64,000 nucleotides of DNA from the NCBI GenBank assembly GCA_025558095.1, contig JAIVFI010000009.1:186001-250000 (forward strand). The letters are read 5' to 3'. Both the position numbers and the translations under genes were made by a program. Source of the DNA: Hyaloraphidium curvatum SAG 235-1. Its lineage: Eukaryota; Fungi; Monoblepharomycota. The first letter of the stretch is position 1; each line of letters starts with the position of its first letter. Of the stretch, positions 27,504-33,358 are shown piece by piece. The notes beneath the pieces were generated by a model that made no database searches, was not told the origin of the DNA, and saw nothing but the letters and a program-made list of their open reading frames with translations.

Positions 27504-27978
27504 CTGCGCGGGCGGTGCGCGGGGGTCGACTCGGCGGGCTGTTGTGCGCGCGCGGGCCGGCGCACTCGGGGCGGGGCGCGGTGCTGCGCCGCGGGGCTGC
27601 GGGCGAGGCGGTGGGGAGCGCGGGCGCGGGAGGCCGGGAAGCGGGGTGCGGTGGTTGCGCCGTGATTCGGGGGTGAGGCGAGGTTCGTGAACCGCTGGCG
27701 CGCCCTCGATGCAGGAAATCCCTCGCTCCACGGAAGCGTCCCAAACCCCGCGCGGGCGCGAAAACATCAAGGCAGATCCTCCGGCTGCTCGATCCGCCGG
27801 AAGGAGCCTCCCAACTCCCTGGAAGGGACAAAGCCACGGACAGACTCCTCAACGTGCAACCCAGGCTCGACACCGAGCATGTGTTCCGCATCGCAAAGAC
27901 AATCCGGGGCAATCCTCCCCGCACCGTGCACCGTTCCCCCGGCCAACCACGGCCACCCAGCAGACGGAGACCCATCCG

Positions 27979-28720
27979 TCACACCGGCACCTGGCATCCG
28001 GCGGATCAGCCCCCGCCTCCCACGGACCGGCCCAGGGCGGCGCACCCACCGTCGTGTACCCCACCCTCCCCGTGGCAGTGAACGTGTACGCCGTCGGATC
28101 CACCGGCTGGTCGCCCGCCGCGTTGGTCGCCAGCACCGTGAACGTGGCCGTGGGCGTCGCCGCCCCGGTGACCGTCGCGGAATAGGTGACGTAGGCCACG
28201 AGCGTCGTCGTGGACCCCGCAGGCACCACCCCCGACGGCGTGGGCGTGTCGAGCTTCCACAACGCCGGGGGGAACGCGCGCCGGAGCAGCTGCGCCTGGC
28301 CCGAGCCGGCGACCTTGGTGATGGTCATGGGCGCGTTGCCGGCGTTGGACACCGTCAGCGTCGTCGTGGCGGCCTTGCCGGTGGTCGACGTGGAGATGCC
28401 GCCGCCGTTCTTGACGTCGAGCATGGTCAGGATGGCCTGGCCCGGGGCGTACCGGCGGTAGAGGTGCTGCGCCTGGGAGTAGCGCACGCACGCGACGTGG
28501 CCCTCGGGTGCGCCGGGGTAGGCGAACTCGCTGCGTTCGGCGCGGTCAGAAGGCGCGGCGGCGGCGGGGGTCGGGCGCACCAGAACTCGGCCTTTCCGCA
28601 CTCGCCGCAGGACCGCTTGAAGACCGGCGACGCGGGGCCCTCGGGCGCCGCGGCGGCGCCGGCGGCGAGTAGCAGCGCGCCGAGAAGGGAAATAAGCAGC
28701 GCGAGCGCCGAGCGCGGCAT
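27979..28720 (-). CDS. Secreted protein: 4-Cys N-terminal module + Ig-like beta-sandwich; introns 28531-28580 and ~27991-28049
   Basis: Signal peptide MPRSALALLISLLGALLLAAGAAA; FKR-SCGECGKAEFCEFAYPGAPEGHVACVRY...LYRR; TLTVSNAGNAPMTI...VPAGSTTTL Ig-like pattern; last exon VPV*. Confidence 0.75.
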
Positions 28721-29373
28721 GGTTTGCGCTGTTCGGGCAGGCAGTTGGCAGTGTTTGGTTTGGAACCGCAGGATGACTCGTCGTCCAGGGACATTTGGTC
28801 GGACCTTGATCCCGCTTTCCAAACGCGGAACCGCGGTCTGCGATGCATGCCCTCGCCTCGGCGCGGGTCGGAGCGAGATTCACGGTGGCCAAGGTGCCGC
28901 CGCGCCGCGCATCGGCCGGCAACCTGCGCGGGCGCGGCCGGGGGGATTTTCGGAAGGATGGGATGTGGACGTCATTTCGAGGGCTCGCGGGGGTCGACGT
29001 TGCCCTTGCCAGACCCGGAAGTCCCCGCTCCGATGCATCGACCTGCCGACAATTTGGAGGCGAGCGGGCCCGCGTTCGCGGTTGTTTGCGTCCCGGGGGT
29101 CGCAGGGTGCGCCGTCCGGCCGGCCTCCGGACCGTCCGACGGAATTCCGGTCCCCCACACTCGCGATAGCCCGTTCCGCCTTCCTCCCGTTCTCGAGCCC
29201 CTTGTTCCGGGCCACGTTACGAAACACATGCACTCCTTTTTGCGTCCCCATCCACCCAGCTAACGCGCAAGGCGCGCTTCAGGGGGCGAATCCACCACCA
29301 ACGATCCGTGCCACACACGGAGGGTCCACCGGGCAGCACCCCGGAAGAACGGCACAAAGTGGCCTCGGCGGCA

Positions 29374-29650
29374 TCAGGGAGGCGGGACGGGCTGCCATGT
29401 TTGCGCCGTCAGCCCCGCGCGGGAACGCGGCCAGCATCGTTCCACCCACCGTGTACCCCACCCTCCCCGTCGCGGTGAACGTGTACGCCGTCGGAGTGAC
29501 CGGCGCATCTCCCGCCGCGTTCGTGGCTAGCACCGTGAAGGTGGCGGTGGGGGTCCCCGACCCTGTCGTCGTGGCGGAGTAGCTGACGAAAGCTACCAGG
29601 TCGGCCGTGGACCCCGCCGGGATGACCGAGGGAGTGGTGGTGACGATCTT
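29374..29650 (-). pseudogene. 5'-truncated duplicate of the 3' half of 27979-28720
   Basis: IPAGSTADLVAFVSYSATTTGSGTPTATFTVLATNAAGDAPVTPTAYTFTATGRVGYT, near-identical to the neighbour, same last intron, terminal exon PVPPP*. Confidence 0.8.
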
Positions 29651-29734
29651 CCGTAGCTTTGGAGCTAACCAACACGCGTCCGCGCATTTCACGTCAGATG
29701 CCGGTGGAATGCGCTGGCGACGGGGATCCCTAGC

Positions 29735-30007
29735 CCAGCTACTACGAGGCCGTGAAGCACGAAGGCCAGCTGGGCCCCTGCTACGAGACGGTCCTCAAAG
29801 CATACAACAAAGTTCATACGCTGCAGCGGCAGTCTCTCGGGCGTGTGCTTCGTCTGCTCCAGGACTTTTCCCATGGACGAGGTGCAGAGATGCTCACGCT
29901 GCAAAACCGGGAAGTACTGCGGCCAGGAGTGCCAGAAGAAGGCCTGGCCGACGCACAAGAAAATGTGTTTCCCCTGGCAGAAGCCTTCCGCGCTCGGCTC
30001 TTCCTAG
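29735..30007 (+). pseudogene. MYND zinc-finger gene remnant
   Basis: From 29843: VCFVCSRTFPMDEVQRCSRCKTGKYCGQECQKKAWPTHKKMC, a complete MYND pattern; upstream frameshift and stop, no start. Confidence 0.75.
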
Positions 30008-30283
30008 ACTTCGATTGAGCACCCACTTGTACTCTTCAACTTACGGCTTTTGGCCAAAGAGATACGTTTTGTGCACTGATCTGTACTCTCTCGCTCATTT
30101 GCTCTTCCGCCGACCGCGGCTTTTTGTTCTTTGTCATTGGAGTTCTGGATGCAGCCAGGGGAACTGGGCGAGTGGCACAGCCAGACTGCGGAATCTCGAA
30201 ACTCCGCGTGCCTCCCAAGCAGTGCAGCGGACCTCGAGCGCCGGGAGACGCGGGCAGCACGTGTCATTGCCCGCGAGCTGCCG

Positions 30284-31684
30284 ATGCTGCGCGCGTTTCG
30301 CCCGGCCATGAAGCCCGTCGCCGAGATTTCCGCCGACCTCTGCCGCCTCATCGGGCTGCCCGACCCCGCGCCGCTCGCCGTCGCCGGGCACGAACCCGTC
30401 CATCCCTCGTCGTTCCGCGTCGATGCCGCCGCCGCCGCGTCGATCGGTGCGGCGGCAGCCGCCGCCGAGGCCGTCTGGAGACACCGCACCAGGGAGCGCC
30501 GCGCCGTGTCGGTCGATCTGCGGCACGCCGCCGCCGAGTTCCGCAGCGAGCGGCTGATCACGCTCGCCGGCAAGCCGCCGCCCGACCCGTGGGACCCTCT
30601 CGCGGGCGCGTACCGCACGGCGGACGGCTGGGTGCGCGTGCACACCAACTTCCCGCACCACCGCGCCGGCATACTCCGCCTGCTTGACCTGCCGGACACC
30701 GCAAAGAGGGACGACGTGGCGGCCGCTTTGCTCGCTCGCAAGGCGGAAGAGTTCGAAACTGCAGCGGCCGACGCCGGGATGTGCGTCGCCGCCTACCGGA
30801 CCCACGAGCAGTGGCTCTCCGCGCCGCAATCCCAAGCCCAGCACGCCCAAACCCCGATCCTCATTACCCCGATCGCACCTTCACCTCCGCTCCCCTTCTC
30901 TGCCAACCCCACGCGCCCCCTCTCCGGCCTGCGCGTCCTGGACCTCACCCGTATCATCGCCGGACCCGTCGCCGCCCGCACTCTCGCAGCCCACGGCGCC
31001 TCGGTGCTCTCTGTCACCTCCCCGCACCTCCCAAACATACCCTCGCTCCTTCCCGACACCAACCGCGGCAAACGTGCCTGCCACATCGACCTCGAGACCC
31101 CCGAGGACACCGAGAAGCTAAAGGACCTGGTCCGCGAGGCGGACGTCTTTCTTCAGTCGTACCGCCCTGGCTCCCTCTCCTCGCGCGGCTTCTCCCCAGA
31201 GTCGCTGGCCGCCCTCAAGCCTGGCATCGTCGTCGCGCAGCTCTCCGCCTACGCCCCCGGCGGACCGTGGGAGCACCGCCGCGGGTTCGATTCTCTTGTT
31301 CAGACCGCGACGGGGATCAACGCCGACGAGGCTGCGGCGTTCGGCTCCGACGCGCCGAGGCCGCTGCCGTGCCAGGCGCTGGACCACGGCGCGGGGCAGC
31401 TGCTCGCGCTCGGAATCGCCGCGGCGAAGCTGCGGCAGGCAACGGAGGGGGGCAGCTGGCTGGTGCGGGTGTCCCTGCAGGGCACGGCTGAGTGGCTGAA
31501 GTCGCTGGGGAGGATCGAAGGGATGAGGTTGGAGCTGCCGGGGTTCGGGGACCTGATGGAGGGCGGCGGAAGGCACGGCGGGGAGGAGATCGCGGGGGTG
31601 AGGCACGCGGGTGTCGTGGAGGGGATGGATGCTTCGCTGGGGGATGCGGGGGTGCCGGGGGAGCAGGCAGCGGAGTGGTGGTGA
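30284..31684 (+). CDS. CoA-transferase family III (CaiB/BaiF), intronless
   Basis: YRTADGWVRVH, PLSGLRVLDLTRIIAGP, NRGKR, ADVFLQSYRPG, RRGFDSLVQTATG, ALDHGAG; start 30284 or 30308. Confidence 0.92.
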   Translation: MLRAFRPAMKPVAEISADLCRLIGLPDPAPLAVAGHEPVHPSSFRVDAAAAASIGAAAAAAEAVWRHRTRERRAVSVDLRHAAAEFRSERLITLAGKPPPDPWDPLAGAYRTADGWVRVHTNFPHHRAGILRLLDLPDTAKRDDVAAALLARKAEEFETAAADAGMCVAAYRTHEQWLSAPQSQAQHAQTPILITPIAPSPPLPFSANPTRPLSGLRVLDLTRIIAGPVAARTLAAHGASVLSVTSPHLPNIPSLLPDTNRGKRACHIDLETPEDTEKLKDLVREADVFLQSYRPGSLSSRGFSPESLAALKPGIVVAQLSAYAPGGPWEHRRGFDSLVQTATGINADEAAAFGSDAPRPLPCQALDHGAGQLLALGIAAAKLRQATEGGSWLVRVSLQGTAEWLKSLGRIEGMRLELPGFGDLMEGGGRHGGEEIAGVRHAGVVEGMDASLGDAGVPGEQAAEWW

Positions 31685-32124
31685 AGTGGTTGCGTCGCAT
31701 TAGGCGAGGACATAAAAGTGCGCATGAAGTTTACAGTGCCAAATGGCGGAATTGCCCCCTTCACGACATCGAGGACCTTAACCAGCATGTCCAGCGGCGT
31801 ACTCGGCCCCTGTTTTGAGGCCCCTGCGGCGTGGTGCGCTTTGAGGGATGGGAATCCCATCGCCGCGGCATTGGTACCGTGTGCGTCGCAACCCAACTCT
31901 CACCGTTCGACAGTGCTTGGCAATCGATTGTGTGGCAGAGGCACCGACGGCGTTTCCATGGTGCACTTATGCATTGGCGACCGCCGCGTCTGCGTCGGGG
32001 AGATTTCGAGCATGCATCAGCCGCCGCCGCTTGAGTCAGAGCCCCGCCCGACCGCCCGAGCTCAGGGACAAGGACACAGGTCCACCAAAAAACCCGAAGT
32101 CCGCGACCGAACAGTGCCGCCACG

Positions 32125-33068
32125 ATGAAGCTCCTCGCGCTCTTTCTGCTTGCCGCGGCTACCGCCGCCGCGGCGCCCAGTGCTTCCGCCGCGCCGTCGG
32201 TTCCCGCACATTCACCCCGCGCCATGCCGCACCCTGACGTCCACCGTCGTCCAGGGCCGCCAACACCGCCGTAGTATACCGCCGCAGCTGCAGCGAGTGC
32301 GCCGACGACGCCGGCACGTACTGGTGGGCGTCCCCGGCCCGGCGCTGGGCAGGATCACCGGCTGACTCACGGCCGCAGCGAGTACAACTACCCCGGTTCG
32401 CCCGAGGGTGCCGTCGCCTGCATCAGATATGGCGCCGCGTCAGCCCGTGCGCTGTACAGGCGCTACGAGCCCGCCGTGTGCCCCCAGGATACCTACGTGC
32501 GGGCCAACTTCGTCGGAACTTATTGGGCCGCGGTGGACGGAGAAAGCTACTCCGGAGCTGGATCCGCTGCGGTGGTTTTCACCACCGGGCCTTCGATCGA
32601 CCCGTGCAGTAAGGTGTGGCGATGGAGGCCTGACATGGCTCTCGGGGCTGACTGATCCGGCGATAGATCACCCTCTTCGTCGCGACGTACCAAAACACGG
32701 GAACCGTCGGCTCCTCCGTGACCTTCGACCTCGATCTCCGCGGCGTCTCTGGGGGCCTACCCTCGTCCGCGCTGCTCGCCTCCGACTCGGTCTCCTTCAC
32801 CTCCAAAGCGCTCGAGCATCTGCTGGTCACCAAGGACAAGATCCCGAACATCGCGGGCTTCGCGATCTCGCCCTCCACACGGTACTCTCTCGTGATGTAC
32901 AACCTCAAGGTCGGCGGATCGCCGAGCACGGAGGTCTCGGTGCTCCGCAACGACACGGCGGACCCTGCGGGGCACACCCTGCTCACTCAGGGGTACAACA
33001 CCGTCTCGTACGTCAAGGACGGTGCAATCTATCCGGGCTCCATCGCCCTCTCTTTCGGCAACTATTGA
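32125..33068 (+). CDS. Secreted protein: 4-Cys N-terminal module + unrelated beta-rich domain; introns 32196-32254, 32324-32378, 32614-32666
   Basis: Signal peptide MKLLALFLLAAATAAAA; YRR-SCSECADDAGTYCEYNYPGSPEGAVACIRY...LYRR; all three introns GT-AG and phase-compatible. Confidence 0.75.
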
Positions 33069-33358
33069 TTTGTTGGAAGCGTTGGGATAACGGCGCCGTA
33101 ACGTGGAAAGTGTTTCTATTTCAATGGCGTCGTTCGCTGCTTCACGACTTTCTTCAAGCTCCATCCTCCTCTTTTTCGTTTATCGACTGCTTGGATTCTC
33201 CGTCGGGGCGAAGCTAGAATATTGTATGGCACAAGGCTCGTTTTCCAATAAGGCAACTATCCCCCGATCGCCATTGTTGATACTCCCAAGCCCACGACGT
33301 GCTTTCCTCCACTAAAATGATGCGGGACAACCTTATTTAATGAGTCTTGCTTTCGAAG

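Follow-up and report, generated by a model that had tools for sequence, protein, structure and literature searches.

The precursors of conotoxins and of amphibian antimicrobial peptides combine a conserved prepro region with a hypervariable mature part. The RXLR and CRN motifs of oomycetes and the PEXEL/TEXEL motifs of apicomplexans are linear and lie in disordered regions of proteins that pathogens deliver into host cells, and the propeptide of von Willebrand factor, which is very large, carries CxxC motifs and is removed by furin. The closest known class to the family described here is formed by the K2PP effectors of plant-pathogenic fungi, which include SnTox3, ToxA and SIX1/4/6 (PMC8528282). 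Their layout comprises a signal peptide, an N-terminal pro-region, a KR, RR or LxxR site and a small, often Cys-rich secreted protein (PMC8528282). The pro-region has been suggested to assist folding, and the pro-domains are mutually non-homologous, rich in disorder-promoting residues and typically without secondary structure (PMC8528282). The extended Kex2 motif is characterised by a preference for Leu in P4, Lys or Arg in P2 and Arg in P1 (PMC8528282).

The DNA analysed here, referred to as the window, is a stretch of 64,000 nucleotides from Hyaloraphidium curvatum SAG 235-1 (contig JAIVFI010000009.1), and positions are given relative to its first letter. H. curvatum is an early-diverging freshwater fungus and is free-living as far as known. 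Two genes in the window, named gene A (+ strand) and gene B (− strand), each encode a signal peptide followed by a four-Cys mini-domain, a LYRRY motif and a C-terminal part, the last being referred to as the cargo. The mini-domain together with LYRRY is referred to as the module.

Structure and transcripts of the two genes in the window

The reading frame of gene A is open only with the three introns listed in Table 1. Contigs from the public run X1 (2018, stored as contigs), which contains 77% of the sampled words of window 27800-33300, omit exactly these three introns and the two introns of gene B, all with GT..AG ends, and a single contig of 1026 nt spans gene A from 32061 to 33253. The assignment of X1 as RNA is by guess only; its intron-less contigs nonetheless show spliced molecules, and they behave as a transcriptome. 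Every splice junction of genes A and B is transcript-supported. The module intron is in both genes in phase 2 within the third Cys codon (TG/intron/C). One transcript contig of 3188 nt crosses gene B and its upstream region (27800-31004, − strand) and also omits 29392-29449.

A previous sequence-only reading of this DNA had proposed both genes as signal peptide, module and cargo, and both do exist as read, with junctions matched by the X1 contigs. The phase-2 introns that it placed in the third Cys codon of each gene are skipped exactly. Its intron list for gene A correctly held the module intron; intron 1, between signal peptide and module, was implied by the reading and was left unlisted. 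Also its observation that the two proteins share no similarity downstream of LYRRY was reproduced. Genes A and B were searched as exon pieces, with the paralogues P0047 and P0045, respectively, as full-length stand-ins for searching and folding, and no similarity was found between the cargos of these closest paralogues (BLASTP E 1.2). The cargo of gene A had no Pfam match, and the only sequence relatives found were P0047 and P0014. The cargo of gene B groups with P0045, P0015, P0001, P0002 and P0069 and gives weak DUF1573 and HYDIN/VesB-like Ig signals.

Table 1. Positions of features of genes A and B in the window.
Feature	Position	Strand	Basis
Gene A, exons, 258 aa	32125-32195, 32255-32323, 32379-32613, 32667-33068	+	Translation
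Gene A exon 1: start codon, signal peptide, short linker	32125-32195	+	Translation; contig from 32061 joins 32195 to 32255; same N-terminus in paralogue P0047
Gene A intron 1: 59 nt, GTCGGT..CAG (donor GTCGGT), CTGAC branch site	32196-32254	+	Skipped by contig; needed by the frame
Gene A exon 2: first half of module, ends with TG of Cys3 codon	32255-32323	+	Translation
Gene A strand 1 (AVVYR)	32268-32282	+	AlphaFold2 model of paralogue P0047:25-81
Gene A upstream RR	32280-32285	+	
Gene A Cys1	32289-32291	+	
Gene A Cys2	32298-32300	+	
Gene A intron 2: 55 nt, phase 2 in Cys3 codon, conserved family-wide	32324-32378	+	Skipped by contig, GT..AG
Gene A second half of module: E-Y-N-Y-P-G-S-P-E-G-A-V-A-C, variable loop, LYRRY	32379-32466	+	
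Gene A LYRRY	32452-32466	+	
Gene A predicted kexin cut	between 32463 and 32464	+	
Gene A cargo, about 183 aa	32464-33068	+	
Gene A intron 3	32614-32666	+	Skipped by contig; needed by the frame
Gene A stop codon	33066-33068	+	
Gene B whole: signal peptide, module, Cys-free Ig-like cargo	27979-28720	−	
Gene B exons	28720-28581, 28530-28050, 27990-27979	−	Translation
Gene B module: P-V-F-K-R-S-C...	28449-28627	−	
Gene B upstream KR	28613-28618	−	
Gene B Cys1	28607-28609	−	
Gene B intron in Cys3 codon, phase 2	28531-28580	−	Skipped by contig
Gene B LYRRY	28449-28463	−	
Gene B last intron	27991-28049	−	Skipped by contig

Sequence, size and distribution of the module family

The mini-domain has about 40 residues, and its consensus in 73 resolved copies is V-[VLI]-F-x-R-S-C-x-[ED]-C-x5(-7)-C-E-[FY]-x-[YFH]-P-G-[AT]-P-x-G-x-V-A-C, with C-x-[ED]-C invariant across the resolved copies. 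A variable loop of 8-12 residues separates it from LYRRY, which is exact in 58 of the 73 copies. The site is dibasic in 68 of the 73; P1 or P2 is non-basic in about 7% of copies, and Tyr occupies P1′ in 81/88. In a set of 61 copies, 28 different 15-mers code for LYRRY, and selection therefore acts at the protein level. Within the 350 kb of DNA examined, the motif was found almost exclusively behind a module. Upstream of Cys1 the residue pair is dibasic in just 45 of 72 copies (RR in 28 and KR in 17), with AR in a further 12; here Phe occupies position −4 in 68/72, Arg position −2 in 62/72 and Ser position −1 in 57/72.

Among 77 copies, the module intron in the Cys3 codon is in phase 2 in 59 and in phase 1 in 6, while 8 copies are intronless and 4 degenerate or unresolved. 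The phase-1 copies (in L005, L033, L055 and L064) have the intron moved by one base in the same Cys codon, and two copies apparently have GC donors. The intronless copies limit the previous claim that the module is assembled in no single open reading frame, which holds for genes A and B.

No match of the module to Pfam was obtained with the exon pieces of the two window genes, even at E values up to 10, with intronless copies or with 89 full-length proteins, in which cargo domains alone were matched; its description as unrecognised in the sequence-only reading is in agreement with this. The module profile had one chance match only among PDB sequences (E 2.4), and literature searched on LYRRY and on the Hyaloraphidium secretome contained nothing relevant. 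The module apparently constitutes an undescribed domain family that is real, expressed and large.

The second-half exon of the gene A module matched 122 places in the 31.9 Mb assembly of H. curvatum itself, nearly all of the matches beginning at query residue 1, directly after the intron. A profile of seven second halves increased this to at least 150 places at E≤0.01 (150 of 183 candidates scored), two of which are the homologous modules of genes A and B, and matches to the full-module profile reached 95 bits. Reading 80 of the first 122 loci gave 77 distinct module copies. A profile search of the genome had been suggested by the sequence-only reading, which missed the scale of what it uncovers, namely a lineage-restricted family of at least 150 copies enriched at contig ends.

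When a profile of ten complete modules was compared with 1.84 billion representative proteins, 88 matches were found at E≤0.001, 65 of them at ≤1e-10. Together with P0002 these make up 89 proteins, of which 45 are encoded in the fetched loci and 30 others are named H. curvatum. A source was assigned for 76 of the 89 (45 by locus, 30 by name and 1 metagenomic). The sole match outside H. curvatum among the assigned proteins is P0089 on the ENA scaffold MUNK22-1_SAMEA7426360 (L084), a metagenome piece of 954 bp with 66% G+C. Its module has the identical phase-2 intron position and its cargo belongs to the group of P0053, P0056, P0072 and P0080. Two scans of JGI metagenomes gave no relative, the pattern of the first scan crossing the intron site so that it could detect intronless copies only. 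On present data the module family appears to be confined to Hyaloraphidium and one closely related organism from the environment.

The copies are unevenly placed in the genome. For 113 copies on contigs of known size, the share lying no more than 20 kb from a contig end is 25%, compared with an expected 5.6%, and the share lying no more than 100 kb away is 59%, compared with an expected 27% (KS p 2.5e-15). Tandem clusters, 17 in number, hold 40 copies, for example six at C28:3-17 kb and three at C17:634-636 kb. Decayed copies were also seen: L054 (C5:918 kb) has an in-frame TGA between Cys1 and Cys2, and one copy in L067 (C28:11.4 kb) has lost the first three Cys.

Protein architecture, cargos and predicted structure

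The proteins have the order signal peptide, linker of about 5-15 residues, mini-domain, loop, LYRR/Y and cargo. By a hydropathy heuristic, 68 of the 72 full-length representatives have Met and a hydrophobic core situated 12-42 residues before Cys1. No protein carries more than one module, and the module is never C-terminal; second HMM stretches in some proteins are fragments or retained introns. Repeated peptide units separated by dibasic sites, looked for as in Kex2-processed repeat proteins, were absent, and each protein holds a single module. Apparent internal modules in P0022, P0058, P0054, P0046, P0025, P0033, P0049 and P0031 are each directly preceded by an internal Met with a signal-like stretch, and these eight public gene models are probably over-extended or mis-joined. 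P0035 also has a long N-terminal extension or fusion ahead of the module, and a VIT-family protein is an example of what is fused in such models.

As the sequence-only reading had proposed from two genes, the module is common to secreted proteins with C-terminal parts unrelated in sequence: 84 cargos fall into 38 BLAST clusters with sizes of 14, 11, 7, 5, 5, 3 and 3, five pairs and 26 singletons. These 84 cargos, which are soluble and mostly Cys-rich, have a median length of about 110 aa, with a Cys content of 4% or more in 68%. Few cargos contain a Pfam domain (EGF, Stig1, NHL, PAN, Peptidase_M8, ALK/LTK glycine-rich or HYDIN/VesB-like Ig) and most contain none. The number of Cys is even in 70/84 cargos, and therefore no disulfide between module and cargo is needed and the four Cys of the module are self-contained. 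At most one Cys is present in 11/84.

No transmembrane segments were found in the 84 cargos; hydrophobic tails were noted in 2, both marginal, and Ser/Thr-rich stretches numbered 4. A function of the module as the tip of anchored adhesins was ruled out by this lack of transmembrane segments and the near-absence of hydrophobic tails and stalks.

In every one of 51 related pairs, conservation is higher in the module (54% identity) than in the cargo (33%). Module identity is 45.8% within the same cargo cluster versus 43.6% between different clusters, and the nearest module shares its cargo in 9/49; the domain of about 50 residues is constrained and carries little phylogenetic signal. That module similarity tracks the cargo cluster so weakly is compatible with shuffling and equally with saturation of a short domain.

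A few genes depart from the general layout. Three tandem genes (L033/L069, C42:6.7-8.5 kb) consist of signal peptide and module with a stop right after K/R-R-Y and have the intron in phase 1. One of them is P0036, a protein of 73 aa that ends one residue after RRY. In P0013 (in L065/L066) a cargo of about 30 residues, with six Cys in knottin-like spacing, directly follows L-Y-K-R-Y, a layout resembling that of a toxin or antimicrobial-peptide precursor.

AlphaFold2 models were made of the module alone (P0047:25-81, with an alignment of 77 sequences) and of full-length P0008. The model of the module alone, with a mean pLDDT of 78, has three beta strands (A-V-V-Y-R, T-F-C-E-F and V-A-C-V-S) and a short helical turn at CxxC; pLDDT is 77-89 in the sheet and 58-64 in the LYRRY tail. 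In P0008 the values are 81-91 for the module, 62 for the LYRRY block and 90-96 for the cargo, which matches PAN/apple domains. LYRRY is thus predicted to lie in an exposed flexible linker between two independent folded domains. Most likely the four Cys of the module form two internal disulfides. The fold had no significant match in the PDB by Foldseek (best E 3.1), the best Z in a wide VIA-align search was 2.8, which is below the meaningful threshold, a shape search of the ESM Atlas gave only unrelated proteins with TM ≤0.5 and a feature search of the Atlas had no usable match. There was also no significant similarity to defensin-like or known small disulfide-rich folds, the module having four Cys and not six or eight.

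These models bear on the dibasic sites that the sequence-only reading had placed on both sides of the module. This holds for the downstream site, which falls in the low-confidence linker and is dibasic in nearly all resolved copies, and fails for the upstream pair, which is frequently not dibasic and falls in beta-strand 1. According to the model, the upstream [KR]R more likely belongs to this strand than represents a second obligatory cleavage site. The further proposal that two flanking dibasic cuts release a peptide of about 40 aa is unsupported as it was worded; what is conserved upstream is V-[VLI]-F-x-R-S.

Proposed processing, alternatives and comparison with known systems

L-Y-R-R/Y, with Leu in P4 and Arg in both P2 and P1, agrees with the extended Kex2 motif (PMC8528282). 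By its sequence, LYRR/Y is a strong candidate for a kexin site. One H. curvatum gene (L081, C21:106.8 kb) encodes both Peptidase_S8 and a proprotein-convertase P-domain, and another 10 matches to the P-domain lie above the Pfam cut-off, including those at C33:286 kb and C17:596 kb, the pairing of S8 and P-domain having been checked in L081 alone. To our knowledge most fungi have a single kexin. With 11 P-domain matches, the P-domain/kexin family may be expanded in H. curvatum.

The reading that we prefer, and to which we give about even chances of being right, takes the mini-domain for a folded leader or pro-domain at the N-terminus that is cut off at LYRR/Y. It would serve as a common leader that helps folding, ER exit or sorting of the cargos; a kexin or furin-type convertase would then cut after LYRR in the late secretory pathway, and the freed cargos would all start with Tyr. 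This reading is favoured because the position after the signal peptide is strict, the module is present in single copy, L-x-R-R is exposed and the module is independent of the cargo. Against it stands the conservation of Tyr in P3 and P1′, beyond the known need of Kex2, which could reflect another recognition partner or a structural role. Described Kex2 pro-domains are moreover usually without secondary structure, whereas the module is modelled as folded, module-only genes are odd for a pure pro-domain, and the roughly 7% of copies with a non-basic P1 or P2 also count against it. The conserved tyrosines and the module-only genes are unexplained by simple Kex2 processing and leave room for two of the three other explanations considered, an attached binding domain and a free bioactive peptide.

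The same two observations would be accommodated if the module stays attached as an N-terminal domain for binding or recognition, of a wall polymer, a surface, a partner or in an oligomer, with LYRRY as a part of this domain or as a docking motif. Its confident predicted fold and its higher conservation than that of the cargos are also in line with such a role. Binding modules, however, usually vary in number and position, while this one is strictly single and directly follows the signal peptide; the LYRRY segment is a low-confidence predicted linker, and an adhesin-like architecture is lacking, with no anchor-like tail or transmembrane segment and few stalks. A permanently attached domain is accordingly regarded as possible though rather unlikely. 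We see only a slim chance for cleavage at both basic sites, with the free two-disulfide peptide of about 40 residues as a product in its own right (a signal, a defensin-like peptide or an inhibitor) and the cargo as second product or carrier. The upstream [VLI]-F-x-R does match the extended Kex2 motif as well, Arg being in P1 in 62/72 (PMC8528282), there are module-only genes, including three tandem ones, and the best, non-significant fold neighbours are helianthamide, cryptdin-4 and a centipede toxin (VIA-align Z 2.2-2.8). But these fold matches are far under any meaningful threshold, and the upstream pair is dibasic in 45/72 only, with Ala in P2 in 12. Upstream of Cys1, Phe is conserved best (68/72), and the segment is predicted strand 1; an upstream cut would strip off a strand unheld by any disulfide.

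Finally, the shared N-terminus might have no function of its own and be just the part of a single, massively duplicated ancestral secreted protein that has evolved slowly, with the cargos as extremely diverged homologues. One intron position is common to the intron-bearing copies, implying a single origin of the module, and tandem clusters and contig ends are typical sites of duplication. The cargos, however, clearly differ in fold and Pfam family (PAN/apple, EGF, Stig1, NHL, Peptidase_M8, ALK/LTK glycine-rich and Ig-like), and many module residues and LYRRY are near-invariant despite free synonymous change, and we consider this explanation highly improbable.

If the module is indeed a shared, folded leader that is cut off at an invariant site, it defines a new family of protein domains and draws attention to many public gene models that are over-extended or fused, and the module with LYRR/Y would be a simple sequence tag for a large share of the secretome of one early-diverging fungus. 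It would also offer a tractable test case for how pro-domains help in the secretion of unrelated folds, and the module could be tried as a secretion leader.

Compared with the known systems, the module resembles the propeptide of von Willebrand factor in that a CxxC-bearing pro-region is followed by a convertase site. It is unrelated to it in sequence and far smaller than that very large propeptide, and a redox activity of the CxxC in the module would be pure speculation. The likeness to K2PP effectors lies in the signal peptide followed by an N-terminal pro-region (68/72 by the hydropathy heuristic) and in a junction motif of the KR/RR/LxxR type (dibasic in 68/73). In contrast to the disordered pro-regions of that class, the module is predicted to be folded, with three strands and pLDDT 81-91, and one homologous, disulfide-bonded domain recurs in at least 150 genes with unrelated cargos, cleavage here being predicted only. 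With the RXLR/CRN and PEXEL systems it shares a lineage-specific N-terminal unit near the signal peptide, a short basic motif, many unrelated C-terminal domains and a location in expanded, plastic regions. The H. curvatum unit differs as a folded four-Cys domain without sequence similarity to them, and we know of no host for this fungus.

The precursors of conotoxins and amphibian peptides are alike in having a conserved leader that ends in a basic site, a fast-evolving and often Cys-rich product, and large, recently expanded families. Their mature parts are homologous short peptides, whereas the H. curvatum cargos are whole domains of varied folds with up to several hundred residues. As a tentative and, in all its parts together, doubtful extension of the leader reading, the genome may hold a genome-wide leader-domain system in which the folded CxxC mini-domain would act as a device for folding or ER export and as a handle for a dedicated L-Y-R-R/Y convertase, with new secreted domains being plugged in and diversified near chromosome ends. 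Such a system would be the fungal counterpart of conotoxin superfamilies or RXLR-type arsenals. Removal of the leader at its invariant site would in any case imply that the design of conserved leader and variable cargo, known from venoms and pathogen effectors, arose also in a planktonic fungus.
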